From Rebecca billardiae RCC1528 (taxonomy: Eukaryota > Protista > Haptophyta), in assembly GCA_965240325.2 (NCBI GenBank), contig OZ251253.1, positions 62,001-126,000 of the forward strand: DNA of 64,000 nucleotides. Direction: 5' to 3'. Below the pieces are notes generated by a model that was not told the DNA's origin, ran no database searches, and saw only the letters and a list, made by a program, of their open reading frames with translations. How positions within the stretch are numbered: the stretch's first letter is position 1; every line of letters starts with the position of its first letter. A program made the position numbers and the translations under genes. Below, piece after piece: positions 14,901 to 56,992 of this stretch.

Positions 14901-17900
14901 GGCGGTGAGGGCGGCGGGTCGGGCGGCGACGGCGGCGGCGATGGCGGTGGAGAGAGCGGCGACGGCGGGAATGGCGGTGCATTGGGCGGGGACGCTGGCG
15001 GCGGCGACGGCGGCACGTGCGCGCGCGGCACCGAGACCACGTCCACGCCGAGCGCAGCCGACAGCTCCTCCAGGCTCGCCGGCGCCGTCTCGGAGGCGCC
15101 CGGCGCAAGCTCTGCGATCGGGTCGACGGCCGTCTCGCCGAGTGACGGCTCGGTCGTCACGCGGATCACCACGTCGAGCTCGCCGCCCGTCGTGCTCGCC
15201 GTGCTCTCCACGCTCAGCCGCGACGCGTCCACGCCCAGCTCGTCCGCGAGCGCCTCGAGCAGGGCAGCGCTCTGCTCGCTGAACACAGCCTCCGTCGTGC
15301 CCAGCGTCAGCCGCACGAACGTCTCAGCCACCAGCGGCGGCGGCGGCGGCGCACTGGGCATGGGCGGCGGCGAGGGCGATATCCGGCGCACGGGCGTGTC
15401 GAGCACGATCACGCCCAGCGACGTCGACAGCTCCGCCAGGCTCGCCACCGAGTCAGCCGACGCCCCTGGCGTGAGCTGCGCCGCTGCATTCACTGCCGTC
15501 TCGCCAGCCTCCTCGTCCGTCGTCACCTTGAGCAGCACGCTCAGGCTGCCGTCCTCGTTCGGCTCGAGCACGTCGATGTCCACGCGCGATGCGTCCACGC
15601 CGAGCTCGGCAGCCATCGCCGACAGAAGGTCGCCGCTGAGCACGGCAAAATCCTCCGCGGACACGTCCAGGCGCAGCTCCACGTACTCCGTCGTCGCAGA
15701 GCCCGGCGGCGGAGACGGCGGCGACGGCGGCGGGTCGGGCGGCGACGGCGGCGGCAATGGCGGTGGAGAGAGCGGCGACGGCGGGAATGGCGGCGCATTG
15801 GGCGGGGACGCTGGCGGCGGCGACGGCGGCACGTGCGCGCGTGGCACCGAGACCACGTCCACGCCGAGCGCAGCCGACAGCTCCTCCAGGCTCGCCGGCG
15901 CCGTCTCGGAGGCGCCCGGCGCAAGCTCTGCGATCGGGTCGACGGCGGTCTCGCCGAGTGACGGCTCGGTCGTCACGCGGATCACCACGTCGAGCTCGCC
16001 GCCCGTCGTGCTCGCCGTGCTCTCCACACTCAGCCGCGACGCGTCCACGCCCAGCTCGTCCGCGAGCGCCTCGAGCAGGGCAGCGCTCTGCTCGCTGAAC
16101 GCAGCCTCCGTCGTGCCCAGCGTCAGCCGCACGAACGTCTCAGCCACCAGCGGCGGCGGCGGCGGCGCGCTCGGCACGGGCGGGGGCGAGGGCGATATCC
16201 GGCTCACGGGCGTGTCGAGCACCACCACGCCCAGCGACGCCGACAGCTCCGCCAGGCTCGCCACCGAGTCAGCCGACGCCCCTGGCGTGAGCTGCGCTGC
16301 TGCATTCACTGCCGTCTCGCCAGCCTCCTCGTCCGTCGTCACCTTGAGCAGCACGCTCAGGCTGCCGTCCTCGTTCGGCTCGAGCACGTCGATGTCCACG
16401 CGCGATGGGTCCACGCCGAGCTCGGCAGCCATCGCCGACAGAAGGTCGCCGCTGAGCACGGCAAAATCCTCCGCGGACACTTCCAGGCGCAGCTCCACGT
16501 ACTCCGTCGTCGCAGAGCCCGGCGGCGGAGATGGCGGAGAGGGCGGCGGGTCGGGCGGCGACGGCGGCGGCGAGGGCGGTGGAGAGAGCGGCGACGGCGG
16601 GAATGGCGGCGCATTGGGCGGGGACGCCGGCGGCGGCGACGGCGGCACGTGCGCGCGCGGCGCCGAGACCACGTCCACGCCGAGCACAGCCGACAGCTCC
16701 TCCAGGCTCGCCGGCGCCGTCTCGGAGGCGCCCGGCGCGAGCTCTGCGATCGGGTCGACGGCGGTCTCGCCGAGTGACGGCTCGGTCGTCACGCGGATCA
16801 CCACGTCGAGCTCGCCGCCCGTCGTGCTCGCCGTGCTCTCCACGCTCAGCCGCGACGCATCCACGCCCAGCTCGTCCGCGAGCGCCTCGAGCAGGGCAGC
16901 GCTCTGCTCGCTGAACGCAGCCTCCGTCGTGCCCAGCGTCAGCCGCACGAACGTCTCAGCCACCAGCGGCGGCGGCGGCGGCGCGCTCGGCACGGGCGGG
17001 GGCGAGGGCGATATCCGGCTCACGGGCGTGTCGAGCACCACCACGCCCAGCGACGCCGACAGCTCCGCCAGGCTCGCCACCGAGTCAGCCGACGCCCCTG
17101 GCGTGAGCTGCGCTGCTGCATTCACTGCCGTCTCGCCAGCCTCCTCGTCCGTCGTCACCTTGAGCAGCACGCTCAGGCTGCCGTCCTCGTTCGGCTCGAG
17201 CACGTCGATGTCCACGCGCGATGGGTCCACGCCGAGCTCGGCAGCCATCGCCGACAGAAGGTCGCCGCTGAGCACGGCAAAATCCTCCGCGGACACGTCC
17301 AGGCGCAGCTCCACGTACTCCGTCGTCGCAGAGCCCGGCGGCGGCGACGGCGGTGAGGGCGGCGGGTCGGGCGGCGACGGCGGCGGCGATGGCGGTGGAG
17401 AGAGCGGCGACGGCGGGAATGGCGGTGCATTGGGCGGGGACGCTGGCGGCGGCGACGGCGGCACGTGCGCGCGCGGCACCGAGACCACGTCCACGCCGAG
17501 CGCAGCCGACAGCTCCTCCAGGCTCGCCGGCGCCGTCTCGGAGGCGCCCGGCGCCAACTCCACGATCGGGTCGACGGCGGTCTCGCCGAGTGACGGCTCG
17601 GTCGTCACGCGGATCACCACGTCGAGCTCGCCGCCCGTCGTGCTCGCCGTGCTCTCCACGCTCAGCCGCGACGCGTCCACGCCCAGCTCGTCCGCGAGCG
17701 CCTCGAGCAGGGCAGCGCTCTGCTCGCTGAACGCAGCCTCCGTCGTGCCCAGCGTCAGCCGCACGAACGTCTCAGCCACCAGCGGCGGCGGCGGCGGCGC
17801 GCTGGGCACGGGCGGGGGCGAGGGCGATATCCGGCTCACGGGCGTGTCGAGCACCACCACGCCCAGCGACGCCGACAGCTCCGCCAGGCTCGCCACCGAA

Positions 17901-20900
17901 TCAGCCGACGCCCCTGGCGTGAGCTGCGCCGCTGCATTCACTGCCGTCTCGCCAGCCTCCTCGTCCGTCGTCACCTTGAGCAGCACGCTCAGGCTGCCGT
18001 CCTCGTTCGGCTCGAGCACGTCGATGTCCACGCGCGATGGGTCCACGCCGAGCTCGGCAGCCATCGCCGACAGAAGGTCGCCGCTGAGCACGGCAAAATC
18101 CTCCGCGGACACGTCCAGGCGCAGCTCCACGTACTCCGTCGTCGCAGAGCCCGGCGGCGGCGACGGCGGTGAGGGCGGCGGGTCGGGCGGCGACGGCGGC
18201 GGCGATGGCGGTGGAGAGAGCGGCGACGGCGGGAATGGCGGTGCATTGGGCGGGGACGCTGGCGGCGGCGACGGCGGCACGTGCGCGCGCGGCACCGAGA
18301 CCACGTCCACGCCGAGCGCAGCCGACAGCTCCTCCAGGCTCGCCGGCGCCGTCTCGGAGGCGCCCGGCACCAACTCCGCGATCGGGTCGACGGCGGTCTC
18401 GCCGAGTGACGGCTCGGTCGTCACGCGGATCACCACGTCGAGCTCGCCGCCCGTCGTGCTCGCCGTGCTCTCCACGCTCAGCCGCGACGCGTCCACGCCC
18501 AGCTCGTCCGCGAGCGCCTCGAGCAGGGCAGCGCTCTGCTCGCTGAACGCAGCCTCCGTCGTGCCCAGCGTCAGCCGCACGAACGTCTCAGCCACCAGCG
18601 GCGGCGGCGGCGGCGCACTGGGCATGGGCGGCGGCGAGGGCGATATCCGGCGCACGGGCGTGTCGAGCACCACCACGCCCAGCGACGCCGACAGCTCCGC
18701 CAGGCTCGCCACCGAGACAGCCGACGCCCCTGGCGTGAGCAGCGCCGCTGCATTCACTGCCGTCTCGCCAGCCTCCTCGTCCGTCGTCACCTTGAGCAGC
18801 ACGCTCAGGCTGCCGTCCTCGTTCGGCTCGAGCACGTCGATGTCCACGCGCGATGGGTCCACGCCGAGCTCGGCAGCCATCACCGACAGAAGGTCGCCGC
18901 TGAGCACGGCAAAATCCTCCGCGGACACGTCCAGGCGCAGCTCCACGTACTCCGTCGTCGCAGAGCCCGGCGGCGGAGACGGCGGAGAGGGCGGCGGGTC
19001 GGGCGGCGACGGCGGCGGCGATGGCGGTGGGGAGAGCGGCGACGGCGGGGCTGGCGGCGCATTGGGCGGGGACGCTGGCGGCGGCGACGGCGGCACGTGC
19101 GCGCGCGGCACCGAGACCACGTCCACGCCGAGCGCAGCCGACAGCTCCTCCAGGCTCGCCGGCGCCGTCTCGGAGGCGCCCGGCGCAAGCTCTGCGATCG
19201 GGTCGACGGCCGTCTCGCCGAGTGACGGCTCGGTCGTCACGCGGATCACCACGTCGAGCTCGCCGCCCGTCGTGCTCGCCGTGCTCTCCACGCTCAGCCG
19301 CGACGCGTCCACGCCCAGCTCGTCCGCGAGCGCCTCGAGCAGGGCAGCGCTCTGCTCGCTGAACACAGCCTCCGTCGTGCCCAGCGTCAGCCGCACGAAC
19401 GTCTCAGCCACCAGCGGCGGCGGCGGCGGCGCACTGGGCATGGGCGGCGGCGAGGGCGATATCCGGCGCACGGGCGTGTCGAGCACGATCACGCCCAGCG
19501 ACGCCGACAGCTCCGCCAGGCTCGCCACCGAGTCAGCCGACGCCCCTGGCGTGAGCAGCGCCGCTGCATTCACTGCCGTCTCGCCAGCCTCCTCGTCCGT
19601 CGTCACCTTGAGCAGCACGCTCAGGCTGCCGTCCTCGTTCGGCTCGAGCACGTCGATGTCCACGCGCGATGGGTCCACGCCGAGCTCGGCAGCCATCGCC
19701 GACAGAAGGTCGCCGCTGAGCACGGCAAAATCCTCCGCGGACACGTCCAGGCGCAGCTCCACGTACTCCGTCGTCGCAGAGCCCGGCGGCGGAGACGGCG
19801 GAGACGGCGGCGGGTCGGGCGGCGACGGCGGCGGCGATGGCGGTGGAGAGAGCGGCGACGGCGGGAATGGCGGCGCATTGGGCGGGGACGCTGGCGGCGG
19901 CGACGGCGGCACGTGCGCGCGCGGCACCGAGACCACGTCCACGCCGAGCGCAGCCGACAGCTCCTCCAGGCTCGCCGGCGCCGTCTCGGAGGCGCCCGGC
20001 GCAAGCTCTGCGATCGGGTCGACGGCGGTCTCGCCGAGTGACGGCTCGGTCGTCACGCGGATCACCACGTCGAGCGCGCCGCCCGTCGTGCTCGCCGTGC
20101 TCTCCACGCTCAGCCGCGACGCGTCCACGCCCAGCTCGTCCGCGAGCGCCTCGAGCAGGGCAGCGCTCTGCTCGCTGAACGCAGCCTCCGTCGTGCCCAG
20201 CGTCAGCCGCACGAACGTCTCAGCCACCAGCGGCGGCGGCGGCGGCGCACTGGGCATGGGCGGCGGCGAGGGCGGTACCCGGCTCACGGGCGTGTCGAGC
20301 ACGATCACGCCCAGCGACGCCGACAGCTCCGCCAGGCTCGCCACCGAGTCAGCCGACGCCCCTGGCGTGAGCTGCGCTGCTGCATTCACTGCCGTCTCGC
20401 CAGCCTCCTCGTCCGTCGTCACCTTGAGCAGCACGCTCAGGCTGCCGTCCTCGTTCGGCTCGAGCACGTCGATGTCCACGCGCGATGGGTCCACGCCGAG
20501 CTCGGCAGCCATCGCCGACAGAAGGTCGCCGCTGAGCACGGCAAAATCCTCCGCGGACACGTCCAGGCGCAGCTCCACGTACTCCGTCGTCGCAGAGCCC
20601 GGCGGCGGCGACGGCGGTGAGGGCGGCGGGTCGGGCGGCGATGGAGGCGGCGATGGCGGTGGGGAGAGCGGCGCCGGGGGGGCTGGCGGTGCATTGGGCG
20701 GGGACGCTGGCGGCGGCGACGGCGGCACGTGCGCGCGCGGCACCGAGACCACGTCCACGCCGAGCGCAGCCGACAGCTCCTCCAGGCTCGCCGGCGCCGT
20801 CTCGGAGGCGCCCGGCGCAAGCTCCGCGATCGGGTCGACGACCGACTCGCCCAGTGGCGGCTGGGTCGTCACGCGGATCACCACGTCGAGCTCGCCGCCC

Positions 20901-23900
20901 GTCGTGCCCGCCGTGCTCTCCACGCTCAGCCGCGACGCGTCCACGCCCAGCTCGTCCGCGAGCGCCTCGAGCAGGGCAGCGCTCTGCTCGCTGAACGCAG
21001 CCTCCGTCGTGCCCAGCGTCAGCCGCACGAACGTCTCAGCCACCAGCGGCGGCGGCGGCGGCGCGCTCGGCACGGGCGGGGGCGAGGGCGATATCCGGCT
21101 CACGGGCGTGTCGAGCACCACCACGCCCAGCGACGTCGACAGCTCCGCCAGGCTCGCCACCGAGACAGCCGACGCCCCTGGCGTGAGCAGCGCTGCTGCA
21201 TTCACTGCCGTCTCGCCAGCCTCCTCGTCCGTCGTCACCTTGAGCAGCACGCTCAGGCTGCCGTCCTCGTTCGGCTCGAGCACGTCGATGTCCACGCGCG
21301 ATGGGTCCACGCCGAGCTCGGCAGCCATCGCCGACAGAAGGTCGCCGCTGAGCACGGCAAAATCCTCCGCGGACACGTCCAGGCGCAGCTCCACGTACTC
21401 CGTCGTCGCAGAGCCCGGCGGCGGCGACGGCGGTGAGGGCGGCGGGTCGGGCGGCGACGGCGGCGGCGATGGCGGTGGAGAGAGCGGCGACGGCGGGAAT
21501 GGCGGCGCATTGGGCGGGGACGCCGGCGGCGGCGACGGCGGCACGTGCGCGCGCGGCACCGAGACCACGTCCACGCCGAGCGCAGCCGACAGCTCCTCCA
21601 GGCTCGCCGGCGCCGTCTCGGAGGCGCCCGGCGCGAGCTCTGCGATCGGGTCGACAACCGTCTCGCCGAGTGACGGCTCGGTCGTCACGCGGATCACCAC
21701 GTCGAGCGCGCCGCCCGTCGTGCTCGCCGTGCTCTCCACGCTCAGCCGCGACGCGTCCACGCCCAGCTCGTCCGCGAGCGCCTCAAGCAGGGCAGCGCTC
21801 TGCTCGCTGAACGCAGCCTCCGTCGTGCCCAGCGTCAGCCGCACGAACGTCTCAGCCACCAGCGGCGGCGGCGGCGGCGCACTCGGCACGGGCGGAGGCG
21901 AGGGCGATATCCGGCTCACGGGCGTGTCGAGCACCACCACGCCCAGCGACGTCGACAGCTCCGCCAGGCTCGCCACCGAGTCAGCCGACGCCCCTGGCGT
22001 GAGCAGCGCTGCTGCATTCACTGCCGTCTCGCCAGCCTCCTCGTCCGTCGTCACCTTGAGCAGCACGCTCAGGCTGCCGTCCTCGTTCGGCTCGAGCACG
22101 TCGATGTCCACGCGCGATGCGTCCACGCCGAGCTCGGCAGCCATCGCCGACAGAAGGTCGCCGCTGAGCACGGCAAAATCCTCCGCGGACACGTCCAGGC
22201 GCAGCTCCACGTACTCCGTCGTCGCAGAGCCCGGCGGCGGAGACGGCGGAGAGGGCGGCGGGTCGGGCGGCGACGGCGGCGGCGAAGGTGGCGGCGGCCG
22301 GAGAGGCGGAGAGCTCGGCGGCATCAAGGGTGGAGGAGATGGCGGCACGTGCGCGCGCGGCACCGAGACCACGTCCACGCCGAGCGCAGCCGACAGCTCC
22401 TCCAGGCTCGCCGGCGCCGTCTCGGAGGCGCCCGGCGCGAGCTCCGCGATCGGGTCGACGGCGGTCTCGCCGAGTGACGGCTCGGTCGTCACGCGGATCA
22501 CCACGTCGAGCTCGCCGCCCGTTGTGCTCGCCGTGCTCTCCACGCTCAGCCGCGACGCGTCCACGCCCAGCTCGTCCGCGAGCGCCTCGAGCAGGGCAGC
22601 GCTCTGCTCGCTGAACGCAGCCTCCGTCGTGCCCAGCGTCAGCCGCACGAACGTCTCAGCCGCCAGCGGCGGCGGCGGCGGCGCGCTCGGCACGGGCGGC
22701 GGGGACGGTGGCGTGAAGGACCGCGGCAGCTCGACGACGGTGACCCCGAGGCTCTGCGAGAGCGCCTCGAGCGTAGCTGGCGAGCTCGGCGTGGCGCCCG
22801 GCGTGAGCTGTCCGACTGCGTCCACTGGCTGCTCGCCCGCCTCCGGGTCTGTGCTCACGCGCACGACCACGCTCAGCGTGCCGTCCTCGTTGGGAACGAG
22901 CTGGTTGACGCTCACGCGCGCCTCGTCCACGCCCAGCGTCTCCGCGATCGCGCCCAGCACGATGTGGCTGTCCACCGCGAAGTCCTCCGCGCTCACGTCG
23001 AGCGTGAGCTCCACGTACTCGTTGGCCGCGAGCGAGGGCGGCGGCGACGGCGGCGACGGCGGCGGGTCGGGCGGCGACGGCGGCGGCGCCGGCGGCGGCG
23101 GTGGCGGCGCTCGGGGCGGGACGGACGGCGGCGACGGCGGCGGCGACGGCGGCACGTGCGCGCGCGGCACCGAGACCACGTCCACGCCGAGCGCAGCCGA
23201 CAGCTCCTCCAGGCTCGCCGGCGCCGTCTCGGAGGCGCCCGGCGCAAGCACGGCGGCGAGGTCGACGAGCGGCTCCCCGGCGCCCCCGCCCGCGCCCGTC
23301 TCCGCGACGAGCTTGAGCACCACGCGCACCAGCCCCTCGTCCGTGATCGTCACGCCCTCGACGCTCAGCCGCCCGACGTCCACGCCCAGCTGCGCGCCGA
23401 TCGTGGCCAGCATCGCGACGCTCGCGTTGCCGAACGCGTCGAGGGTGGTGTTGAGCGTGAGCGCCGCGTACGACTCGGCCGAGAGGTCCGGCGGCGGCGA
23501 GGGCGGCGACGGGGGCGACGGGGGCGAGGGCGGCGGCGGCGGCGACGGCGGCGGCGGGGACGACGGCGGCGATGGCGGCGGGAACGGCAGCGTGCGCGGC
23601 GGCGGCGGCGGGCTCGGCGGCGGCGTCGGAGGCGGGGCCCCCGGTGGCGTCGACGGCGGCTGTGGTGGGGAGGCCGGCGGCGGCGGGGACGGTGGCGGCG
23701 TCGGTGGCGGCGGCGACGGCGGCGGCGACGGCGGTCGCGACGGCGGTGGGCTCGGCGGCGGCGACGGCGGCGGTGCAGGCGGCGACGGCGGCGGGAAGGG
23801 CTCGGTGCGCGGCGGCGGCGGCAGGCTCGGCGGGGGAGCCGGCGGCGGCGAGGGAGGCGGGCGCGGCGGGGGCGAGGGCGGCGACGACGGCGGTGCAGGC

Positions 23901-26900
23901 GGGGTGTGCGGCGGGGGCGACGGAATGAACGAGGGCGGCGGGGAAGGCGGTGGCGACGGAGGCGGGCCTGGCGGCGGCGACGGTGGTGGCGGTGACGGTG
24001 GCGGGCTCGGCGGCGGGGAAGGCGGCGGGGAAGGCGGCGGGGAAGGCGGCGGGGAAGGCGGAGGCGAAGGCGGCGGGGAAGGCGGCGGCGATGGCGGCGG
24101 CGGGCTGGGCGGCGGGCTGGGCGGCGGCGAGGGCGGCGGGCTCGGCGGCGGCGAGGGAGGCGGTGGGCTCGGTGGCGGGCTTGGCGGCGGAGATGGCGGC
24201 GGCGACGGTGGCGGGCTGGGCGGCGGGCTCGGCGGTGGCGAGGGCGGCGGGGAAGGCGGTGGCGAGGGCGGCGGGGAAGGCGGCGGGCTCGGTGGCGGCG
24301 AGGGCGGCGGGCTTGGCGGCGGAGATGGCGGCGGCGAAGGCGGCGGGCTGGGCGGCGGGCTGGGCGGCGGGCTCGGCGGCGGCGAAGGCGGCGGGCTCGG
24401 TGGCGGGCTCGGCGGCGGGCTTGGCGGCGGAGATGGAGGCGGCGACGGTGGAGGGCTGGGGGGCGGGCTCGGTGGAGGCGACGGCGGTGGAGACGGAGGC
24501 GGGCTTGGCGGCGGGGACGGGGGCGGGCTGGGCGGCGGGGAAGGCGGCGGCGACGGCGGCGGGATTGGCGGGGGCGATGGAGGCGGGGAAGGCGGCGGGC
24601 TCGGCGGCGGGCTAGGAGGCGGGGACGGCGGCGGGGAAGGCGGCGGACTCGGCGGCGGCGATGGCGGTGGTGATGGCGGCGGCGACGGCGGTGGGCTCGG
24701 CGGCGGGCTCGGCGGCGGGCTAGGAGGTGGGCTCGGCGGCGGGGAAGGCGGCGGACTCGGCGGCGGCGATGGCGGTGGTGATGGCGGCGGCGACGGCGGT
24801 GGGCTCGGCGGTGGGCTCGGCGGCGGGCTCGGCGGCGGGCTAGGAGGCGGGGACGGCGGCGGGGAAGGCGGCGGACTCGGCGGCGGCGATGGCGGTGGTG
24901 ATGGCGGCGGCGACGGCGGTGGGCTCGGCGGCGGGCTCGGCGGCGGGCTAGGAGGTGGGCTCGGCGGCGGGGAAGGCGGCGGACTCGGCGGCGGCGATGG
25001 CGGTGGTGATGGCGGCGGCGACGGCGGTGGGCTCGGCGGTGGGCTCGGCGGCGGGCTCGGCGGCGGGCTAGGAGGCGGGGACGGCGGCGGGGAAGGCGGC
25101 GGACTCGGCGGCGGCGATGGCGGTGGTGATGGCGGCGGCGACGGCGGTGGGCTCGGCGGCGGGCTCGGCGGCGGGCTAGGAGGTGGGCTCGGCGGCGGGG
25201 AAGGCGGCGGACTCGGCGGCGGCGATGGCGGTGGTGATGGCGGCGGCGACGGCGGTGGGCTCGGCGGTGGGCTCGGCGGCGGGCTCGGCGGCGGGCTAGG
25301 AGGCGGGGACGGCGGCGGGGAAGGCGGCGGACTCGGCGGCGGCGATGGCGGTGGTGATGGCGGCGGCGACGGCGGTGGGCTCGGCGGCGGGCTCGGCGGC
25401 GGGCTAGGAGGTGGGCTCGGCGGCGGGGAAGGCGGCGGACTCGGCGGCGGCGATGGCGGTGGTGATGGCGGCGGCGACGGCGGTGGGCTCGGCGGTGGGC
25501 TTGGCGGCGGCGAAGGCGGCGGGCTCGGCGGCGGGCTCGGTGGCGGCGACGGCGGCGGGCTCGGCGGCGGGCTCGGCGGCGGGCTCGGCGGTGGCGACGG
25601 GGGCGGTGACGGTGGCGGGCTCGGCGGAGGCGACGGCGGTGGGCTCGGTGGTGGCGAGGGCGGCGGGCTCGGCGGCGGCGACGGTGGCGGGCTCGGCGGC
25701 GGGCTCGGCGGTGGCGATGGCGGCGGCGACGGCGGTGGGCTCGGCGGTGGCGATGGCGGCGGGCTCGGCGGTGGCGAGGGCGGCGGCGAAGGCGGCGGGC
25801 TCGGCGGCGGCGACGGCGGTGGGCTCGGCGGCGGCGACGGTGGTGGCGAAGGCGGCGGGCTTGGCGGTGGCGAGGGCGGCGGACTCGGCGGCGGGCTCGG
25901 CGGCGGGCTCGGCGGCGGCGAGGGCGGCGGGCTCGGCGGCGGCGACGGAGGCGGCGACGGGGGTGGGCTCGGTGGCGGCGACGGCGGCGGCGACGGAGGC
26001 GGCGACGGCGGCGGACTCGGCGGCGGCGAGGGCGGCGGGCTCGGCGGCGGGCTTGGCGGTGGCGATGGCGGCGGGCTCGGCGGCGGGCTCGGCGGCGGCG
26101 AGGGCGGCGGGCTCGGCGGCGGGCTCGGCGGCGGGCTCGGCGGCGGGCTCGGCGGAGGTGACGGCGGTGGGCTCGGTGGCGGGGATGGCGGTGGGCTCGG
26201 CGGCGGCGATGGCGGCGGGCTCGGCGGCGGCGACGGGGGTGGCGATGGCGGAGGCGACGGGGGCGGGCTCGGCGGTGGCGATGGGGGTGGCGACGGCGGG
26301 GGACTCGGCGGCGGAGACGGCGGCGGGCTCGGCGGTGGCGAGGGAGGCGGCGAAGGCGGCGGGCTCGGCGGTGGCGACGGCGGCGGCGCCGGAGGCGGGC
26401 TCGGTGGGGGCGAAGGTGGCGGGGATGGTGGTGGGCTTGGCGGTGGGCTCGGCGGCGGTGAGGGCGGCGGGCTCGGCGGCGGGCTTGGCGGCGGCGAGGG
26501 CGGCGGGCTCGGTGGTGGGCTGGGCGGGGGCGATGGCGGCGGGCTCGGCGGGGGGCTCGGCGGGGGCGATGGCGGCGGGCTTGGCGGCGGTGACGGTGGC
26601 GGTGACGGTGGCGGGCTCGGAGGTGGGCTCGGTGGCGGGGATGGCGGCGGCGATGGCGGCGGGCTCGGCGGCGGGCTTGGCGGCGGCGACGGTGGTGGCG
26701 ACGGTGGCGGGGAAGGCGGCGGTGACGGTGGCGGTGACGGCGGCGGGCTCGGAGGTGGACTCGGTGGCGGCGAGGGCGGCGGGCTCGGTGGTGGGCTGGG
26801 CGGGGGCGAGGGAGGCGGGCTGGGCGGTGGGCTCGGTGGTGGCGACGGCGGCGGGCTTGGCGGCGGCGAAGGTGGCGGCGACGGCGGCGGGCTGGGCGGT

Positions 26901-29900
26901 GGTGACGGCGGCGGTGACGGCGGCGGGCTCGGAGGTGGGCTCGGCGGCGGCGACGGCGGCGGCGACGGCGGCGGAGACGGCGGCGGAGACGGCGGCGGGG
27001 ACGGCGGCGGAGACGGCGGCGGGGACGGCGGCGGGCTCGGAGGCGGGCTCGGAGGCGGGCTCGGCGGAGGGCTCGGCGGCGGCGAAGGCGGTGGGCTCGG
27101 CGGCGGGCTAGGCGGAGGGCTCGGCGGCGGACTTGGCGGTGGGCTCGGCGGTGGTGACGGCGGTGGGCTCGGTGGCGGGCTCGGCGGCGGGGATGGCGGC
27201 GGGCTCGGCGGCGGGCTCGGTGGCGGCGAGGGCGGCGGGCTCGGTGGTGGGCTGGGCGGGGGCGACGGCGGCGGGCTCGGCGGGGGGCTCGGCGGGGGCG
27301 ACGGCGGCGGGCTTGGCGGCGGTGACGGCGGCGGTGACGGTGGCGGGCTCGGAGGTGGGCTCGGCGGCGGCGACGGCGGCGGCGACGGCGGCGGAGACGG
27401 CGGCGGAGACGGCGGCGGGGACGGCGGCGGAGACGGCGGCGGGGACGGCGGCGGGCTCGGAGGCGGGCTCGGAGGCGGGCTCGGCGGCGGGCTCGGCGGC
27501 GGCGAAGGCGGTGGGCTCGGCGGCGGGCTAGGCGGAGGGCTCGGCGGCGGACTAGGCGGTGGGCTCGGTGGTGGTGACGGCGGTGGGCTCGGTGGCGGGG
27601 ATGGCGGCGGGGATGGCGGCGGGCTCGGCGGCGGGCTTGGCGGCGGCGAAGGTGGCGGAGACGGCGGTGGGCTGGGGGGCGGTGACGGCGGCGGTGAGGG
27701 CGGCGGGCTCGGTGGCGGGCTTGGCGGCGGCGAGGGCGGCGGGCTCGGTGGTGGGCTGGGCGGGGGCGAGGGAGGCGGGCTGGGCGGTGGGCTCGGTGGT
27801 GGCGACGGCGGCGGGCTTGGCGGCGGCGAAGGTGGCGGCGACGGCGGCGGGCTGGGCGGTGGTGACGGCGGCGGTGACGGCGGCGGGCTCGGAGGTGGGC
27901 TCGGCGGCGGCGACGGCGGCGGCGACGGCGGCGGAGACGGCGGCGGAGACGGCGGCGGGGACGGCGGCGGAGACGGCGGCGGGGACGGCGGCGGGCTCGG
28001 AGGCGGGCTCGGAGGCGGGCTCGGCGGAGGGCTCGGCGGCGGCGAAGGCGGTGGGCTCGGCGGCGGGCTAGGCGGAGGGCTCGGCGGCGGACTTGGCGGT
28101 GGGCTCGGCGGTGGTGACGGCGGTGGGCTCGGTGGCGGGCTCGGCGGCGGGGATGGCGGCGGGCTCGGCGGCGGGCTCGGTGGCGGCGAGGGCGGCGGGC
28201 TCGGTGGTGGGCTGGGCGGGGGCGACGGCGGCGGGCTCGGCGGGGGGCTCGGCGGGGGCGATGGCGGCGGGCTTGGCGGCGGTGACGGCGGCGGTGACGG
28301 TGGCGGGCTCGGAGGTGGGCTCGGCGGCGGCGACGGCGGCGGCGACGGCGGCGGAGACGGCGGCGGAGACGGCGGCGGGGACGGCGGCGGAGACGGCGGC
28401 GGGGACGGCGGCGGGCTCGGAGGCGGGCTCGGAGGCGGGCTCGGCGGAGGGCTCGGCGGCGGCGAAGGCGGTGGGCTCGGCGGCGGGCTAGGCGGAGGGC
28501 TCGGCGGCGGACTAGGCGGTGGGCTCGGTGGTGGTGACGGCGGTGGGCTCGGTGGCGGGGATGGCGGCGGGGATGGCGGCGGGCTCGGCGGCGGGCTTGG
28601 CGGCGGCGAAGGTGGCGGAGACGGCGGTGGGCTGGGCGGCGGTGACGGCGGCGGTGAGGGCGGCGGGCTCGGTGGCGGGCTTGGCGGCGGCGAGGGCGGC
28701 GGGCTCGGTGGTGGGCTGGGCGGGGGCGAGGGAGGCGGGCTGGGCGGTGGGCTCGGTGGTGGCGACGGCGGCGGGCTTGGCGGCGGCGAAGGTGGCGGCG
28801 ATGGCGGCGGGCTGGGCGGCGGTGATGGCGGCGGTGATGGCGGCGGGCTCGGAGGTGGGCTTGGCGGCGGCGACGGCGGCGGCGACGGCGGCGGAGACGG
28901 CGGCGGAGACGGCGGCGGGGACGGCGGCGGAGACGGCGGCGGGGACGGCGGCGGGCTCGGAGGCGGGCTCGGAGGCGGACTCGGCGGCGGGCTCGGCGGC
29001 GGCGAAGGCGGTGGGCTCGGCGGCGGACTCGGCGGAGGGCTCGGCGGCGGACTAGGCGGTGGGCTCGGCGGTGGTGACGGCGGTGGGCTCGGCGGCGGGC
29101 TCGGCGGCGGTGAGGGTGGCGGGCTCGGGGGCGGGCTTGGCGGCGGCGAGGGCGGCGGGCTCGGTGGTGGGCTGGGCGGGGGCGAAGGCGGCGGGCTCGG
29201 CGGGGGGCTCGGCGGGGGCGACGGCGGCGGGCTTGGCGGCGGTGACGGCGGCGGTGACGGTGGTGGGCTCGGAGGTGGGCTCGGCGGCGGTGACGGCGGC
29301 GGGGATGGCGGCGGGCTCGGCGGCGGGCTCGGAGGCGGCGAAGGTGGTGGGCTAGGCGGCGGGCTAGGGGGAGGGCTCGGTGGCGGGGATGGCGGCGGCG
29401 ATGGTGGCGGGCTCGGCGGCGGCGAGGGAGGGGGGCTCGGCGGCGGCGAAGGCGGCGGACTTGGCGGTGGCGAAGGCGGCGGGCTGGGCGGCGGGCTGGG
29501 CGGCGGGCTCGGCGGCGGGCTGGGCGGCGGGCTGGGCGGCGGCGACGGCGGCGGGCTCGGCGGTGGGCTCGGCGGAGGGCTCGGCGGCGGTGAAGGCGGC
29601 GGGCTCGGCGGTGGTGATGGCGGAGGGCTCGGTGGCGGTGATGGCGGCGGGCTCGGCGGAGGGCTCGGTGGCGGTGAAGGCGGCGGACTGGGCGGCGGCG
29701 AAGGCGGGGGGCTTGGGGGCGGGCTTGGTGGCGGCGAAGGCGGCGGGCGCGGAGGAGGGCTGGGCGGCGGAGACGGCGGCGGAGACGGCGGCGGCGACGG
29801 CGGCGGAGACGGAGGCGGAGACGGCGGAGGGCTTGGCGGAGGGCTCGGCGGCGGCGACGGCGGCGGGCTTGGCGGAGGGCTCGGCGGCGGCCTTGGTGGT

Positions 29901-32900
29901 GGGCTCGGCGGCGGGCTTGGAGGTGGCGATGGCGGAGGGCTCGGCGGCGGCGAGGGCGGAGGGCTCGGCGGCGGGCGCGGTGGCGGGGAGGGCGGCGGGG
30001 ACGGCGGCGGGCTTGGCGGCGGTGAGGGCGGTGGGCTAGGCGGCGGCGACGGCGGCGGGGACGGAGGCGGGCTCGGCGGAGGGCTCGGTGGCGGGGATGG
30101 CGGTGGGCTCGGCGGCGGACTCGGCGGTGGAGACGGAGGCGGGCTTGGCGGTGGCGGGCTGGGCGGAGGGCTCGGCGGCGGGCTCGGAGGGGGCGACGGC
30201 GGTGGGCTCGGCGGCGGCGAGGGCGGCGGGCTCGGCGGCGGGCTCGGCGGCGGGCTCGGCGGCGGGCTCGGCGGCGGGCTCGGCGGTGGGCTCGGCGGCG
30301 GGCTCGGCGGCGGGCTCGGCGGCGGCGATGGCGGCGGGCTCGGAGGTGGCGGGCTCGGCGGCGGGCTCGGCGGCGGAGACGGCGGCGGTGACGGCGGCGG
30401 AGACGGCGGCGGGCTCGGCGGCGGGCTCGGCGGCGGAGACGGCGGCGGAGAAGGCGGCGGGCTCGGCGGCGGCGAGGGCGGCGGGCTCGGCGGAGGGCTC
30501 GGCGGCGGCCTTGGTGGTGGGCTCGGCGGCGGGCTTGGAGGTGGCGATGGCGGAGGGCTCGGCGGCGGCGAGGGCGGAGGGCTCGGCGGCGGGCGCGGTG
30601 GCGGGGAGGGCGGCGGGGACGGCGGCGGGCTTGGCGGCGGTGAGGGCGGTGGGCTAGGCGGCGGCGACGGCGGCGGGGATGGAGGCGGGCTCGGCGGAGG
30701 GCTCGGTGGCGGGGATGGCGGCGGGCTCGGCGGCGGACTCGGCGGTGGAGACGGGGGCGGGCTCGGCGGTGGCGGGCTGGGCGGAGGGCTCGGCGGCGGG
30801 CTCGGAGGCGGCGACGGCGGTGGGCTCGGCGGCGGCGAGGGCGGCGGGCTCGGCGGCGGGCTCGGCGGCGGGCTCGGTGGCGGGCTCGGCGGCGGGCTCG
30901 GCGGTGGGCTCGGCGGCGGGCTGGGCGGCGGGCTCGGCGGTGGCGATGGCGGCGGGCTCGGAGGTGGCGGGCTCGGCGGCGGGCTCGGCGGCGGGCTCGG
31001 CGGCGGTGAGGGCGGCGGGCTCGGCGGCGGGCTCGGTGGCGGGCTCGGCGGCGGAGACGGCGGCGGGCTCGGTGGCGGGCTCGGCGGAGGGCTCGGTGGC
31101 GGGGATGGCGGCGGGCTCGGCGGCGGACTCGGCGGTGGAGACGGAGGCGGGCTCGGCGGTGGCGGGCTTGGCGGAGGGCTCGGCGGCGGGGACGGTGGCG
31201 GCGACGGCGGGGGGCTCGGCGGAGGCGAGGGCGGCGGGCTCGGCGGCGGGCTCGGCGGCGGGCTCGGGGGCGGGCTCGGCGGCGGGCTCGGCGGTGGGCT
31301 CGGCGGCGGGCTGGGCGGCGGGCTCGGCGGTGGCGATGGCGGCGGGCTCGGAGGTGGCGGGCTCGGCGGCGGGCTCGGCGGCGGGCTCGGCGGCGGTGAG
31401 GGCGGCGGGCTCGGGGGCGGCGACGGCGGCGGTGACGGTGGCGGACTCGGTGGCGGGCTCGGTGGCGGCGAGGGCGGCGGGCTCGGCGGCGGGCTCGGCG
31501 GCGGGCTCGGAGGAGGGCTCGGAGGAGGGCTCGGCGGCGGGCTCGGCGGCGGCGGGCTCGGCGGCGGCGACGGTGGCGGGCTCGGCGGCGGGCTGGGAGG
31601 AGGCGACGGGGGCGGGCTCGGCGGCGGGCTGGGCGGCGGGCTGGGCGGTGGGCTCGGCGGCGGGCTCGGCGGTGGACTGGGTGGCGGGGAGGGCGGCGGG
31701 CTGGGCGGCGGGCTCGGTGGTGGCGACGGCGGCGGGCTCGGGGGCGGTGGGCTCGGCGGCGGGCTGGGCGGCGGGCTGGGCGGTGGCGATGGCGGCGGTG
31801 AAGGCGGCGGCGACGGCGGCGGGCTCGGCGGCGGGCTCGGTGGCGGACTCGGTGGCGGTGAGGGCGGGGGGCTCGGCGGCGGGCTCGGCGGCGGGCTTGG
31901 CGGCGGGCTTGGCGGAGGCGACGGCGGCGGGCTCGGCGGCGGCGGGCTCGGCGGAGGCGAAGGTGGCGGGCTGGGCGGCGGGCTCGGCGGCGGGCTCGGC
32001 GGCGGGCTCGGCGGCGGGCTGGGCGGCGGGCTCGGCGGCGGGCTCGGCGGCGGGCTCGGCGGCGGCGACGGCGGCGGGCTCGGCGGCGGTGGGCTCGGCG
32101 GCGGGCTCGGCGGCGGGCTCGGCGGCGGGCTCGGCGGCGGGCTCGGCGGCGGACTCGGCGGTGGGCTCGGCGGTGGACTGGGCGGCGGGCTCGGCGGCGG
32201 GCTCGGCGGTGGGCTCGGCGGCGGACTCGGCGGAGGAGAGGGTGGCGGGCTCGGCGGCGGGGAGGGCGGCGGGCTCGGCGGCGGCGGGCTCGGCGGCGGG
32301 CTGGGCGGAGGGCTCGGCGGCGGCGACGGCGGCGGGGACGGGGGAGGGCTCGGCGGCGGCGATGGCGGCGGGCTGGGCGGCGGACTCGGCGGCGGGCTCG
32401 GCGGCGGGCTCGGCGGCGGGCTCGGCGGCGGGCTCGGCGGCGGCGGGCTCGGCGGCGGGCTCGGCGGCGGGCTCGGCGGCGGGCTCGGCGGCGGCGATGG
32501 CGGCGGGCTCGGCGGCGGGCTCGGTGGCGGCGACGGCGGTGGGCTCGGCGGCGGCGGGCTCGGCGGAGGGCTCGGCGGCGGCGAAGGCGGTGGGCTGGGA
32601 GGCGGCGAGGGCGGCGGGCTCGGCGGCGGGATCGGTGGCGGCGACGGCGGCGGGCTTGGAGGCGGCGACGGCGGTGGCGATGGTGGTGGTGACGGCGGCG
32701 GGCTGGGCGGCGGCGGGCTGGGCGGCGGCGAGGGCGGCGGGCTCGGCGGCGGCGATGGCGGCGGCGACGGCGGCGGGCTCGGCGGGGGCGACGGCGGCGG
32801 GCTCGGCGGCGGCGGGCTCGGCGGCGGGCTCGGCGGCGGGCTCGGCGGCGGGCTCGGCGGCGGACTCGGCGGCGGACTCGGCGGTGGGCTCGGCGGCGGA

Positions 32901-34954: not shown

Positions 34955-36131
34955 GATCTGTCACTGGCTCAACTCCTACAGCCAGCCCCCTCCTCGACCA
35001 GTGCAAGTTGACCAGTGCTCCGGCACCGGTCGGCACCCGCCCGCCTGCTGGCTCGCCGAGTGGCTTGTGAACCATTCGCCCGAAGGGGCGATGGCGAGCA
35101 CTGGGCGACGCGAGGGCCCGCGTGCGCAGCGCTCCCAAGGCCGCATGCGGGCTTGACAGCCGTGCGCGGGCGCTTTGCGGGGGCGAGAACACCCGTAGAC
35201 AGCAATCGCGCCGCCTCGTCCACGCCCTGGCCGCCCTCTCCGCGCGCAGAGACCTGCCGGATGGCAAGCGCAGTTCTGGAGAAGGCCTGTCCGACGAGCG
35301 TGATGGACACGCGTGCGCCCCTGGGACATTCAAAGGTCGGCTTTTTCGCTTCTGCGAGATGGGTATGGGTGTCTCAACATCACTGCTTCGCCGGCAGCCA
35401 TGCCGACATCGATCGGCAGGCCAGCAACGCGCAAGACGTGCATCTCGGTCGTGTGGCGTGCATGAGCCGCGAGCACTGGCACGACGTGCACGGCAAAGCC
35501 CGTCATGCGCCTCGACGCGCACGCGCCGCGGCGGACGACCGAGGAGGCGCGCGCAGGCTGGCCTTCTTGGCGGCGGCTGTCCGGGAGTGCCCGCGCACGC
35601 GCAACGCGTATTCAAAGAGCTCCCGGAAGGCAACGACTCCTATGGGACGCCTTGGGGACGCGCACGTTGCCTTTCGCCGCGCGAGGGCTCTTCGGGCGTA
35701 TGGTTTGCAAGCCAGTGGCAACCAGCGCGCGCGGTCCGGAGACGCAGGGCTGTTTTGTCACTTGCGAGTTCGGTCAATAGCTAGTTTCAGGGAAGTCCGC
35801 GGAAGATCGAATCTCATCCTGATACGCACTATCAGATGATCAGCTGTCCATCTGTGGAGCGGCATGAGCGATGAAAATATAGGGCTAAAGGCGCGATGCT
35901 CTTGATCATGCGGGAATGCACTCGATATCATAAATCCATACCGGCGTGGGTAATCCAAACTCTTTTTAACCAATCGTCGCGATATTACGACCCCACTTGT
36001 AAGTATGATCGTATTGGCGCGCGCTGAGGAATCTATCATGAATGCTATTTTAAACTATACGTGCCGGACCGCCCTGCACCGGACGGGCCCGGGGCTGACG
36101 AAACGGGCCAGACCGCCCGGGAGGCGCAGCC

Positions 36132-38843
36132 TCAGCGCGCGCCGTGGCGCGCGCCGTCCGCCTCGAGCAGCTGCGCGCACTTGGCGTTCGGGTCGCCGCT
36201 CGGATCGTCGATGACGACGGCACGCAGCTGGCCGTCCGACTTGGCGCCGTCGCGCTTCCGCCTCGCCTCGAACTGGTTGCACTCGCCGAACGCGAGCGTG
36301 TGCTGCTCGCCCACAAAGTTGGCGTACACGCGGCCGCCCTCGGCCGCGTCGAAGCCCCACTCGCCCAGGCCCCACGGCGTGGAGAGCAGCCCGCCGCTGA
36401 GGAAGAGCATCGGCTCCGCGCCGTCCCACGACCACGGCCCGCTGCCCTCCACCTGCGCGCCGCGCCGCGCGCCGCGCGCGTGGCGCGAGCGGCGTGAGCC
36501 GCGGGCGCGGCGGCGCGCGGACGCGGCCAGACGCGGCCGCGCGCGGCGCGCGGCCGCGCACCTTGGCTCGCAGCTCGGGCGGCGCGGCGTCGCGCGCGCT
36601 CGCCCACGCGGCGGCGCCGGCGGGCCGCTCGCCCACGAGGACGCCGGTGGTCGTGGTGCCCGTGCCGCGCCGCTTGCGCGTGCACTCGGCGCTGAAGCGC
36701 GCGGGCAGCGGCTCGGCCGAGCCGTCGGGCGGGTGCGCGCCCGGCGTGAGCACGCACGCCTCGTCGCACAGCGAGACGTCCACGCCCGAGACGTCCACGC
36801 CCGAGACGTCCACGCCCGAGACGTCCACGCCCGAGACGTCCACGCCCGAGACGTCCACGCCGCCGGCGGCGGCGTCGGCCGCGGCGGGCTGCCACGTGCC
36901 GGCGAGCGCGGCGGCGCCGGCGGCGCCGCCGCCCGCCTCGCCCGCGGGCGAGAGCAGCAAGCCGTCCGCGAGGAAGAACCAGCGCCGGCCGCGCCACGCG
37001 TACGGCCCGGCGCCGAGCAGCCGCTTGGCGGCCGGGTGCGCCGGCTCGAACCGGCCGGCGCCGCCCGCGCCCGCGCCCGCGCTCGCCCAGCCGGTGGTGC
37101 CGCGGCCCTCGGTGGGCCAGCCGGGCAGGTTGGCGGTGGCCTCGGCCCAGAGCGCGTGCAGCGTGTGCGCGCACGCGCCCGCGCACTTGGGCGGCGGCGC
37201 GAGCTCCTTGGGCGGGAAGGCGTTCATGTAGTTGCGCTTGTCGAGCGACCACTCGCCCTTGCGGGGGTAGGGCAGCCCCCGCGCCGTGTACTCGAGCCCG
37301 TACGTGTAGTGGAAGGTGTAGTAGCCCGCGGACTCGAAGGAGGCGTCGCAGTGCCACAGCGCGGAGGGCTCGACCTGGATCGTCGGCCACAGCTTGTGCC
37401 GGATCTTCATCCGCGCCGCCGCCAGCGTGTACCCCCACATCTCGAGCACCCAGCCGTACGCCGCGTTGGCCGCCGGGTCCCGCTTGAGCGCCATCGAGAG
37501 CGCAAACCAGTGCGGCGTCAGCTTGCGCAGCAGGTCGACGTGGATGATGACGGGCGAGGGGCCGATCGGGTCGACCGTGTCGCACGCGGTGTGGTACGGC
37601 CGCGCCGCCGCGCACAGCTTGCTGTCCTTCGCGTTCATGTACCCGAACGGGTAGCCGACCGGCAGCGTGGGCTGCGCCTTGTTTGGCAGCGGCCGCATGT
37701 ACAGGTGGTCCGTCTCCGCGATCAGCACGTACTCCTCCTTCACGTACTGGCGGAAGCGCGCCGACTGCATGAACTGGAGCACGCCGTACGGCCGGTTGAG
37801 CACGACGAAGCCGAGGTCGCCTGCCGGTCCGCGCCGAGGCGGCGGGGGGGGGGGGGGGTGGAGGGGAGGGCGCGCGGCTCGGCGCGCGGCGCGGCGCGCG
37901 GCGCGGCGCGGCGCGGCGCGGCGCGGCGCGGCCGCCGGCGCGGCCGCGCGGCGCGGCGCGCACCGCAGCGCTCAAAGCTGCACTGCAGCGTGTCGAGCGG
38001 GCAGTCGCACTCGGGCAGCGACGCGTCGCAGTAGCAACGCGGCGAGCGCAGCACCGCCTGCCAGTCGCAGTCGCACTCGGGCTTGTCCTTGCCCGCGACC
38101 ATCCGCTTGACGGTGAAGGTGGGCATCTCGTCGCACAGCTCGTCGCACCCGCCGTCGAACGTGTTGAGCAGCCGGGTGAAGCCGCCCATGTCGGAGCACG
38201 GGTGCTCCTTCTTGAGCTTGTTGAAGTGGTACCACATCATGCGCGACTGCCACTGCTGGTACGTCGACGAGTCCGCCGTCTGCACGACGTGGAACGGGCG
38301 GCGGCCGGCGGGGCACTCGCCCGTCGACGGGTCGGGCTCGGCCGGGCCGCTGTCGGCCTCGGGGCACGCGTCGCACGAGAAGGGGCACTTCTCGCGCATG
38401 TACGCCGGGTTCTTCGTGCACTCGCCCCCGCCCGCCCACGCCGAGCACAGCGGCTCCACGTCCGCGCAGCCCGGCCGGCCGCCCGGCTTGGCCTTGGCGC
38501 CGGCCGCGGGCCCGCGCGCCGCCGCGGACAGCGCGGACTGGCGCTTGGCCACGGGGTTGGGCGCGGGCTTGGCGCCGCCCGCGGCGGGGACGGGCGCCGA
38601 GCCGCCCGCGCGCGCGCTCGCGCTCGCCTCGGCGAGCGCCTCCAGCCGCTTGATGCGCGAGAGGATCGCGCGCTGCGACGCGGGCGACTCGCCGTCGTCG
38701 AGCGAGCCCCACGTGCACGCCATGCGGCCGGCCTGGAAGCCGGTGGCGAGGAGGAGCAGGTAGCCGACGAGGTGGAGCGTCGACGCGCCGCCGCCGCCGC
38801 GGTTGGCGCCCGCCGCGCCGCCGCCGCGCTGCACGGTCCCCAT
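36132..38843 (-). CDS. HPAT: Hydroxyproline O-arabinosyltransferase-like (GT95) type II membrane protein with ShKT domain; exons 38843-37964, 37820-36562, 36452-36132 (819 aa)
   Basis: N-terminal TM (LHLVGYLLLLATG) and ShKT (CADVEPLCSAWAGGGECTKNPAYMREKCPFSCDAC). HPAT motifs: FHVVQTA..YQQWQSRMMWY, MGGFTRLL, FVVLNRPY, EEYVLIAETDH, PIGPSP, GWVLEMWGY, HYTYG, GEWSLDKR. Two GT..CAG introns (37963-37821, 36561-36453) restore the frame. Confidence 0.9.
36772..36861. repeat. Perfect 15-bp coding minisatellite x6 (GVDVS repeats) within HPAT exon 2
   Basis: cgagacgtccacgcc repeated six times. Confidence 0.95.
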
Positions 38844-41041: not shown

Positions 41042-41072
<31 letters not shown>

Positions 41073-42160: not shown

Positions 42161-42202
42161 CGCGCGCGCCCGCCAATGATCAAATCGCTCGATCGCGCGC
42201 CG

Positions 42203-56991: not shown

Positions 56992-56992
56992 C

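Follow-up and report, generated by a model that had tools for sequence, protein, structure and literature searches.

An HPAT-family glycosyltransferase gene with a ShK domain lies beside a giant SPPP-rod gene in a haptophyte, probably as an incidental neighbour

Two neighbouring genes on the minus strand of the stretch of haptophyte DNA analysed here (64,000 nucleotides, hereafter the window) encode an apparently intact HPAT-family glycosyltransferase that carries a ShK domain, and a giant predicted secretory protein in which a rod of Ser-Pro3 (SPPP) repeats is followed by 59 lineage-specific globular domains, or ‘beads’. Judged from their sequences, both are real genes. The organism is pavlovophyte-like, and the reading we consider probable is that the two genes are separate predicted transcription units, that the HPAT is one of several serving SPPP rods, and that their closeness is most likely a matter of chance, or reflects a weak neighbourhood effect at most.

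In plants and green algae, HPAT-type enzymes act on SPPP-type motifs once the prolines have been hydroxylated; to our knowledge, no HPAT has been characterised in haptophytes. The presumed acceptor is contiguous hydroxyproline (Hyp) in the Ser-Pro(n) motifs of secretory proteins, and in the papers found, Hyp-O-arabinosylation is described only for plants and green algae (PMC8012813, PMC7773692).

The HPAT-like gene extends from an ATG at 38843 to a stop codon ending at 36132 and lies upstream of the giant gene, whose ATG is at 34954 (Table 1). The initial annotation had placed the HPAT stop about 1.2 kb from the giant gene's ATG on the same strand, which is borne out by a measured gap of 1,177 bp; its extent for the giant gene (23930-34900) marked a real gene but far too little of it, as the frame that begins at 34954 is still open at window position 1 and continues past it. 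No conserved ORF was found in the spacer between the two genes. On the side away from the rod gene, a PIP5K gene stands head-to-head with the HPAT gene, the two starts being ~160 bp apart, and no P4H (prolyl 4-hydroxylase) gene occurs within the 64-kb window. The DNA is very GC-rich (75-87% GC), with long open frames arising in several frames, and the choice of frame was based on codon statistics (GC1/2/3 of 0.76/0.59/0.90 for the beads and 0.69/0.58/0.99 for the HPAT gene). A 9,225-residue plus-strand ORF (7479-35156) is an antisense shadow of the giant minus-strand gene; R-rich and AAEP-type minus-strand frames and a G-rich plus-strand ORF were likewise rejected, being other frames of the same repeat. 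Searches of sequencing runs listed no RNA run and a single weak DNA run, and a Logan contig of run ERR14847148 matches the window at 100%.

Table 1. Features of the HPAT gene, the spacer and the giant gene, in window coordinates.
Feature	Position	Strand	Description
HPAT exon 1	37964..38843	-	ATG 38843; both the start and the end of the exon align with orthologue P0001 and with its contig L013; also encodes a coiled segment
Type II anchor (predicted)	38727-38777	-	exon 1
ShK domain	38364-38468	-	exon 1; Pfam
HPAT domain, first part	from 38294	-	exon 1
Cys-rich insert	from 38075	-	exon 1; final codon straddles first splice junction
HPAT intron 1	37821..37963	-	143 bp, GT..AG, pyrimidine tract
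HPAT exon 2	36562..37820	-	remaining GT-A catalytic domain to 37111; ETDH, GWVLEMWGY and HYTYG motifs
First C-terminal beta module	from 37008	-	exon 2
(GVDVS)6 repeat	36772-36861	-	exon 2
HPAT intron 2	36453..36561	-	109 bp, GT..AG
HPAT exon 3	36132..36452	-	second C-terminal beta module and stop codon
Spacer between genes	34955..36131	-	~300 bp AT-rich (~35760-36060), then moderately GC-rich to giant ATG
Giant gene start	34856..34954	-	ATG 34954; hydrophobic signal peptide or anchor (predicted), residues 18-33; in-frame stops just upstream
(SPPP)n rod	23489..34723	-	3,745 residues; 12-nt period, ~876 copies
Bead array	2..23488	-	59 domains of 103-111 residues, SPn linkers between

The HPAT gene has three exons and two introns and encodes 819 residues; its spliced coding sequence (2,460 nt) has no internal stops and a GC3 of 0.99. 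The first exon junction and the three-exon order are confirmed by L013, a 2.8-kb contig without introns that carries the orthologue P0001 and is present in two JGI samples, against which the blastn alignment of the window breaks precisely at the edges of intron 1 (37963/37821). Pfam recognizes both the ShK domain (31 bits) and the HPAT domain (PF23452, gathering score 23.9), the latter with 79 bits over positions 1-67 and 256 bits over positions 77-307 of the 307-position profile, and the full profile is matched at 1e-76; the match is split in two because of intron 1 and the Cys-rich insert. Hydrophobic residues 23-39, following a Gly/Arg-rich N-terminus, suggest on inspection only a type II topology. 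NCBIfam and PDB sequence searches with the same protein returned only weak ShK matches.

A structure model was made for P0001, whose identity to the window protein is 70%. The model (pLDDT 81 overall, 89-98 in the catalytic domain) has a GT-A fold, comparable to LgtC (Z 16.4, rmsd 3.3, 237 aligned), UGGT (Z 15.2) and glycogenin (Z 14.8), and Foldseek on it gave GT6/GT8 matches. All invariant and near-invariant alignment columns are kept in the window protein (ETDH at the DxD-like position, GWVLEMWGY, HYTYG.EY); ETDH, GWVLEMWGY and HYTYG are common to every retrieved relative, and in those relatives where a hydrophobic segment was detected, it is N-terminal. All matches from the protein searches were HPAT-like proteins of algae or environmental samples, with no named HPAT or SGT1 of plants among them; in the ESM Atlas, the closest clusters with a name are Streptophyta HPAT-like (313-385 residues, score 0.95), a lead only.

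The window protein thus resembles Arabidopsis HPAT1-3 and green-algal HPAT (GT95, PF23452) in its full-length profile match, its predicted N-terminal type II anchor and its modelled GT-A fold. Plant HPAT enzymes are ~360-380 residues long, whereas the window protein, at 819 residues, also has the ShK domain, two beta modules at its C-terminus and, within the catalytic domain, a Cys-rich insert of 38 residues. Plant and algal prolyl 4-hydroxylases carry a ShK domain, a luminal Cys-knot module of the same type, at their C-terminus, but the ShK domain in the window sits on a glycosyltransferase. ShK-HPAT fusions already form automatic ESM Atlas clusters for Haptophyta and Chlorophyta.

Downstream of the HPAT gene, the giant frame is unbroken from its ATG for more than 11,651 residues and runs past the window edge; the C-terminus of the giant protein, and hence any membrane anchor, lies beyond the window. 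The rod comprises 2,804 Pro and 900 Ser, with 843 SPPP and 38 SPPPP motifs (881 SPPP(P) in total), and as a polyproline-II helix (0.31 nm per residue) would be ~1.16 micrometres long. A bead was modelled with a ferredoxin/SEA-like alpha/beta fold (pLDDT 92). Pfam hits on the beads were noise, low scores added together without any stretch that passed, the Foldseek matches to a bead were all ferredoxin-like with E above 1e-3, and an exhaustive profile search retrieved only 26 proteins; the results of a word-based search with three beads were dominated by SPn words.

The nearest parallels for such a protein are known HRGPs. Chlamydomonas MST1 has SPPP(P) motifs; every proline of its polyproline-II segments is a glycosylated Hyp and the serines carry galactose, the sugars forming a carbohydrate casing (PMC11015965). 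With MST1/MST3 and GP1-type HRGPs, the giant protein shares predicted secretion and a long, predicted polyproline-II rod combined with globular domains; its rod, however, is 3,745 residues long compared with 78 in MST1, is almost purely SPPP, and is followed by the 59 lineage-specific beads. Land-plant extensins also have Ser-Pro3-4 repeats after a signal sequence, but the giant protein is ~30 or more times larger, and its organization is that of a rod plus beads rather than of a wall network monomer. Moreover, Tyr is absent from the rod (0/3,745), so that it has no YXY/isodityrosine (or VYK) extensin cross-link motif. The ‘extensin-type’ coat proposed in the initial annotation is therefore right as to the SPPP motifs, but too narrow a description.

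Haptophyte HPAT sequences form several well-supported clades in a tree, indicating a multigene family, with two or more paralogues in D. lutheri and three or more in P. parvum; the two annotated D. lutheri HPATs are 40-42% identical to the window protein and are paralogues of it. The clade to which the window protein belongs carries a ShK domain and a Cys-rich insert of its own. An SPPP rod gene was found beside none of ~95 other HPAT loci (0/~95) within the available sequence around each; 80 of these loci are metagenomic, and the sequence of ~28 of the 80 extends 1.5 kb or more downstream. Contigs of true orthologues are cDNA-like or end 131-800 bp past the stop codon (P0001 is on 2.8-kb intron-free contigs and P0002 on a 3.2-kb contig, while P0116 is a transcript). 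The P0001 contig is HPAT-only and flanked by UTRs and, if it represents an mRNA, is monocistronic; a metagenome scan with P0001 alone gave no matches.

A new link came from a related marine contig (locus L006), on which a co-orthologous HPAT gene (P0019) is paired head-to-head, at a distance of 582 bp, with a gene encoding 2OG-FeII_Oxy_3 and ShK domains (a P4H-ShK gene). The pair is present on two independent assemblies, and the ShK domain of the P4H-ShK gene is 40% identical to that in the window (E 2e-4). As a predicted gene pair, it fits a Hyp-based pathway in haptophytes. In the scheme that we infer, from the hydroxylation and the identity of the sugar to the range of substrates and the localisation, ShK-bearing P4H-type enzymes would hydroxylate SPPP prolines in the ER/Golgi. 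HPAT-type enzymes would then add the first sugar to these hydroxyprolines, by analogy beta-L-arabinofuranose; the window HPAT would be one such enzyme, a GT95-like GT-A glycosyltransferase of the Golgi type with a type II anchor, a ShK domain on the luminal side and a pair of C-terminal beta modules. Further transferases would lengthen the sugar chain, producing a carbohydrate-cased rigid rod as in Chlamydomonas HRGPs. The window enzyme probably sugar-coats SPPP rods in general, as one of several paralogues that may serve SPPP-rod proteins, its neighbour included.

The initial annotation had paired the giant HRGP with a dedicated glycosyltransferase as a linked, possibly co-regulated module. 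As types of enzyme and substrate, the two remain a plausible pair, given the HPAT domain and the 881 SPPP(P) motifs, but dedication and co-regulation are not supported. A selected enzyme-substrate module, in which a rod-specialised HPAT is kept beside the rod gene for co-regulation (in one chromatin domain, for instance), would account for two neighbouring genes that share a strand and are separated by 1,177 bp; at a rough guess, uncomputed, the chance that any one of a few HPAT genes abuts one of ~50 giant SPPP genes among ~15,000 genes is only a few percent. The distinct ShK domain and Cys-rich insert of this HPAT clade would suit such specialisation, and the HPAT-P4H pair in a relative indicates that pathway genes can cluster in haptophytes. 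We nonetheless consider a dedicated module unlikely. The SPPP rod gene is absent from the available flanks of every other HPAT locus examined, so that conservation of the adjacency did not emerge among the ~95 loci, including the 28 of 80 metagenomic loci with at least 1.5 kb downstream; the HPAT gene shares its 5' end with PIP5K, ~160 bp away, and not with the rod gene, from which the AT-rich spacer divides it; the orthologue contig is consistent with a monocistronic HPAT transcript; only a handful of HPAT clades exist, several of the haptophyte ones well supported; and the finding itself was picked after the fact. No likelier is the broader proposal that in this genome the genes of HRGP-modifying enzymes (here HPAT) lie clustered with those of their giant SPPP-rod substrates, as eukaryotic ‘glyco-gene clusters’ that build micrometre-long sugar-cased surface or flagellar hairs and constitute a complete non-green Hyp-arabinosylation system. 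Adjacency alone adds little unless it is enriched genome-wide.

Two other explanations concern the genes individually. The window enzyme could be a member of the HPAT/SGT1 superfamily with another specificity (a Ser acceptor, another donor, or small peptides or scale proteins as targets), the rod not being its substrate. GT95 is related to GT96 (PMC8012813), the protein searches gave no named plant HPAT or SGT1 among their matches, the several well-supported haptophyte clades could have diverged functionally, and this one has extra domains absent from the plant enzymes. The match to the whole PF23452 profile, the three motifs present in all retrieved relatives, the N-terminal position of the hydrophobic segment where detected and, as a lead only, the Streptophyta HPAT-like ESM Atlas clusters argue against a different specificity, which we regard as improbable; since both known superfamily activities target Ser-Hyp(n), the rod remains a likely substrate either way. 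Far less credible is a non-functional giant ORF, that is, an assembly-expanded or decaying repeat array left open by chance in very GC-rich DNA. Long open frames do occur in several frames at this GC content, and the length of the array rests on the assembly, but the 35 kb are open in precisely the one frame that encodes a signal anchor, SPPP units and 59 domains that fold well. The bead copies, moreover, differ mostly at third codon positions (30/48/91, 34/8/74 and 61/47/126 in three copy groups), and bead-plus-SPPP proteins are found on an independent JGI contig too.

With the two genes read as real but separately transcribed neighbours, the broader interest lies in the components themselves. 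The intact, diversified HPAT family of haptophytes, the P4H-ShK/HPAT pair and the giant SPPP rods together predict Hyp-arabinosides on haptophyte surface or flagellar glycoproteins; if this prediction is true, the machinery that glycosylates HRGPs would have originated or spread more widely than Viridiplantae, similar to the point made by Moller et al. for ExAD-like GT47 genes (PMC5371791).

Minus-strand open reading frames at 38843-36132, in a window of 74-87% GC, match the Pfam ShK domain (31 bits) and positions 1-67 and 77-307 of the 307-position HPAT profile PF23452 (79 and 256 bits; cut-off, 23.9). P0001, a 767-residue JGI protein and the closest full-length relative, aligns with the window by tblastn in three collinear blocks, and the spliced coding sequence comprises 2,460 nt (819 residues; no internal stops; GC3 0.99). 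The P0001 gene is intron-free on 2.8-kb contigs, which occur in two JGI samples and have UTR-like flanks; its contig aligns with the window by blastn in three collinear blocks that correspond to the three exons, with an exact break at the first junction (37963/37821) and resumption at most 4 nt from the start of exon 3, which supports the window gene model. If these contigs are transcripts, the orthologue would be expressed as an HPAT-only mRNA.

Features of the HPAT gene, the giant gene and neighboring genes (residue numbers refer to the encoded proteins)
Feature	Position	Strand	Basis or remark
HPAT exon 1	38843-37964	-	tblastn with P0001, canonical junction
HPAT intron 1	37963-37821	-	GT..AG
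HPAT exon 2	37820-36562	-	tblastn with P0001, canonical junctions
HPAT intron 2	36561-36453	-	GT..AG
HPAT exon 3	36452-36132	-	tblastn with P0001, canonical junction
HPAT N-terminal hydrophobic anchor	residues 23-39		
HPAT helical segment	between anchor and ShK		
HPAT ShK domain	residues 126-160		six-Cys
HPAT domain	residues 184-530		
HPAT Cys-rich insert	residues 257-294; 37819-38075	-	38 residues with 8 Cys
HPAT C-terminal modules	from residues 565 and 718		two, related
(GVDVS)6 repeat	36772-36861	-	first C-terminal module; in-frame 15-nt microsatellite
Giant protein signal peptide or anchor	residues 18-33		
Giant protein rod	34723-23489	-	3,745 residues, after signal peptide or anchor
Giant protein beads	after rod		59 on SPn linkers, 103-111 residues each
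PIP5K gene	38953-42240	+	Pfam 209 bits; divergent from HPAT gene
EamA/SLC35F-like transporter gene	54087-56039	-	59 bits; drug/metabolite transporter superfamily
RPS29 gene	56993-57172		within stretch 55164-57878

The Cys-rich insert, which splits the catalytic domain between profile positions 67 and 77, is common to the window protein, P0001 and P0002 (another close relative) and specific to their clade, while the (GVDVS)6 repeat is missing from P0001. An AlphaFold model of P0001 (input alignment, 44 sequences; mean pLDDT 81, 89-98 in the catalytic domain) lies closest to LgtC (Z 16.4), the UGGT catalytic domain (15.2) and glycogenin (14.8), and is also matched by Foldseek to GT6 and GT8 enzymes; the predicted fold is GT-A. 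A sequence search for solved structures found none closer to the HPAT protein. The family-invariant motifs ETDH, GWVLEMWGY and HYTYG.EY are all kept in the window protein.

GT96, the Ser galactosyltransferase SGT1, is a relative of GT95 (PMC8012813). Since named plant HPAT or SGT1 sequences were not among the relatives retrieved in protein searches with HPAT, the putative placement of the window protein inside GT95 rests on the Pfam match and on a lead from the ESM Atlas, Streptophyta HPAT-like clusters of 313-385 residues (score 0.95). ShK-HPAT fusions from Haptophyta and Chlorophyta already form automatic ESM Atlas clusters, and databases already label haptophyte proteins ‘HPAT-like domain-containing’. 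The window enzyme shows the HPAT features of profile match, motifs, N-terminal anchor and, as modeled for P0001, GT-A fold, and differs from plant HPAT enzymes by its added domains and its lineage; we speculate that tethering, either to partner enzymes or to a glycosylated rod as it grows, may be the role of its ShK domain and its pair of C-terminal beta modules.

The giant gene, also on the minus strand, has its first ATG downstream of in-frame stops at 34954; its frame encodes more than 11,651 residues and leaves the window before the C-terminus is reached. The initial annotation had placed the HPAT stop about 1.2 kb from this ATG on the same strand, and that adjacency is confirmed (36132 to 34954; 1,177 bp); the gene extents needed revision, as the HPAT gene has two introns and the giant frame is open from its ATG to window position 1. 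The rod contains 2,804 Pro, 900 Ser and 41 other residues, includes 843 SPPP and 38 SPPPP units, and would be ∼1.16 micrometres long as a polyproline-II helix. Its repeat has a period of 12 nt, with the TRF consensus AGC-CCA-CCG-CCG on the coding strand; CCA is thus one of three Pro codons, and this one codon per repeat may limit perfect repeat identity. The GC3 of the rod (0.81) is below that of neighboring genes (HPAT, 0.99).

One bead was modeled as a beta-alpha-beta-beta-alpha-alpha-beta unit (pLDDT 92), whose structural matches, all weak, are of the ferredoxin-like or SEA-like type (the Nup54 ferredoxin-like domain, a dystrophin-glycoprotein complex chain, a receptor-PTP ectodomain). The domain is rare, with 26 hits in 1.8 billion representative proteins, one of them on a JGI contig (L015:1-3183; sample 3300038657) that starts with SPPP repeats and encodes at least four beads; bead-plus-rod proteins therefore occur in at least one other sample. 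Two signs mark the giant gene as coding: a bead GC content of 0.76/0.59/0.90 at codon positions 1/2/3, and a predominance of third-position differences between bead copies. A 9,225-residue plus-strand ORF and other minus-strand frames were rejected as genes, being by-products of the giant gene repeat.

Whether this adjacency reflects a dedicated, possibly co-regulated enzyme-substrate module, as had been proposed, was assessed from the gene family, its loci elsewhere and the local layout. A tree of 45 sequences joins the window protein to P0001, P0002 and the transcript P0116 (support 100), and this group is sister (support 94) to a clade containing one P. parvum protein, P0019 and P0023; several further well-supported clades hold the D. 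lutheri paralogue pair, another two paralogues from P. parvum and the E. huxleyi protein, clades which indicate that HPAT is a multigene family in haptophytes. A giant SPPP gene was absent within 10 kb at two D. lutheri loci, the E. huxleyi locus and four ENA loci, where Pro-rich segments of ∼100 residues occur in two loci only. A Pro-rich segment of the SPn type (∼118 residues) belongs to the convergent neighbor of the E. huxleyi HPAT gene (L012:13732-15471, minus strand; 382 bp off), and may be there by chance in a Pro-rich proteome. Another 80 metagenomic HPAT loci, 436 kb in all, likewise gave no giant SPPP gene; 28 of them extend at least 1.5 kb downstream and 27 at least that far upstream. 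No HPAT contig has an SPPP array at its end, although assemblies from short reads are broken by arrays of this kind, and contigs of the window orthogroup stop 131-800 bp past the stop codon. Conserved linkage of HPAT and rod genes is thus not borne out in the flanks examined.

Locally, the HPAT ATG (38843) faces the PIP5K gene at a distance of ∼160 bp from that gene's first in-frame ATG (39001), suggesting that the two genes possibly share a bidirectional promoter; the rod gene is thus not on the side of the HPAT promoter region. The spacer between the HPAT and giant genes includes a ∼300-bp AT-rich stretch, typical of a gene boundary. Taken with the multigene family and the lack of SPPP giants in the flanks examined at the other HPAT loci, this layout leaves the proposed module unsupported. 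Assuming a few HPAT paralogues and ∼50 giants in a set of ∼15,000 genes, we roughly estimate the chance of one adjacency of this kind at a few percent, without correction for after-the-fact selection across all HRGP-modifying enzymes. Real clustering of such genes is a possible but less probable reading.

A different pairing was found for P0019, a co-orthologue whose gene, on a Tara contig (L006:7054-11947) and in an independent assembly (L007:990-5883), lies head-to-head with and 582 bp from a 470-residue gene. The latter combines 2OG-FeII_Oxy_3 (60 bits) and ShK (26 bits) domains, the architecture of plant and algal prolyl 4-hydroxylases (P4H); its sole match in the window is between its ShK and that of HPAT (40% identity, E 2e-4). 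The arrangement resembles a pathway pair of two enzymes sharing a bidirectional promoter, and we estimate that chance is an unlikely source of a P4H-HPAT pair among ∼7 well-flanked loci, given the few P4H genes per genome. The pairing fits HPAT acting on hydroxyproline.

In the mechanism we propose, the rod protein would enter the secretory pathway via its signal anchor, its SPPP prolines would be hydroxylated by ShK-bearing P4H-type enzymes, and the first sugar would be added to Hyp by type II anchored HPAT enzymes; other transferases would extend the chain, with haptophyte ExAD-like GT47 genes as candidates (PMC5371791). The model case is Chlamydomonas MST1, a protein with SPPP(P) motifs in which every PPII proline is a glycosylated Hyp and the serines each carry one galactose, the sugars encasing and stiffening the helix (PMC11015965). 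Of the ‘extensin-type’ coat initially suggested, Ser-Pro repeats behind a signal anchor are present, but the rod is no extensin in the strict sense because the Tyr motif is missing (0 Tyr in 3,745 residues); algal HRGP rods are nearest in kind. A comparison with extensins has been drawn for an E. huxleyi protein containing Ser-Pro3-4 repeats (PMC10290126), and the papers found discuss HPAT for plants and green algae only (PMC7773692). The presence of Hyp-arabinosides in haptophytes is a concrete, testable prediction.

Elsewhere in the window, the EamA/SLC35F-like gene, 18 kb from the HPAT gene, has a weak UAA nucleotide-sugar transporter match. The region 48000-53500, in which no convincing ORF was found, has 62-65% GC, against 74-87% in the rest of the window, and may be non-coding or foreign. 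The stretch 55164-57878 has a 100% identical counterpart, probably from the source organism, in a Logan contig of run ERR14847148.
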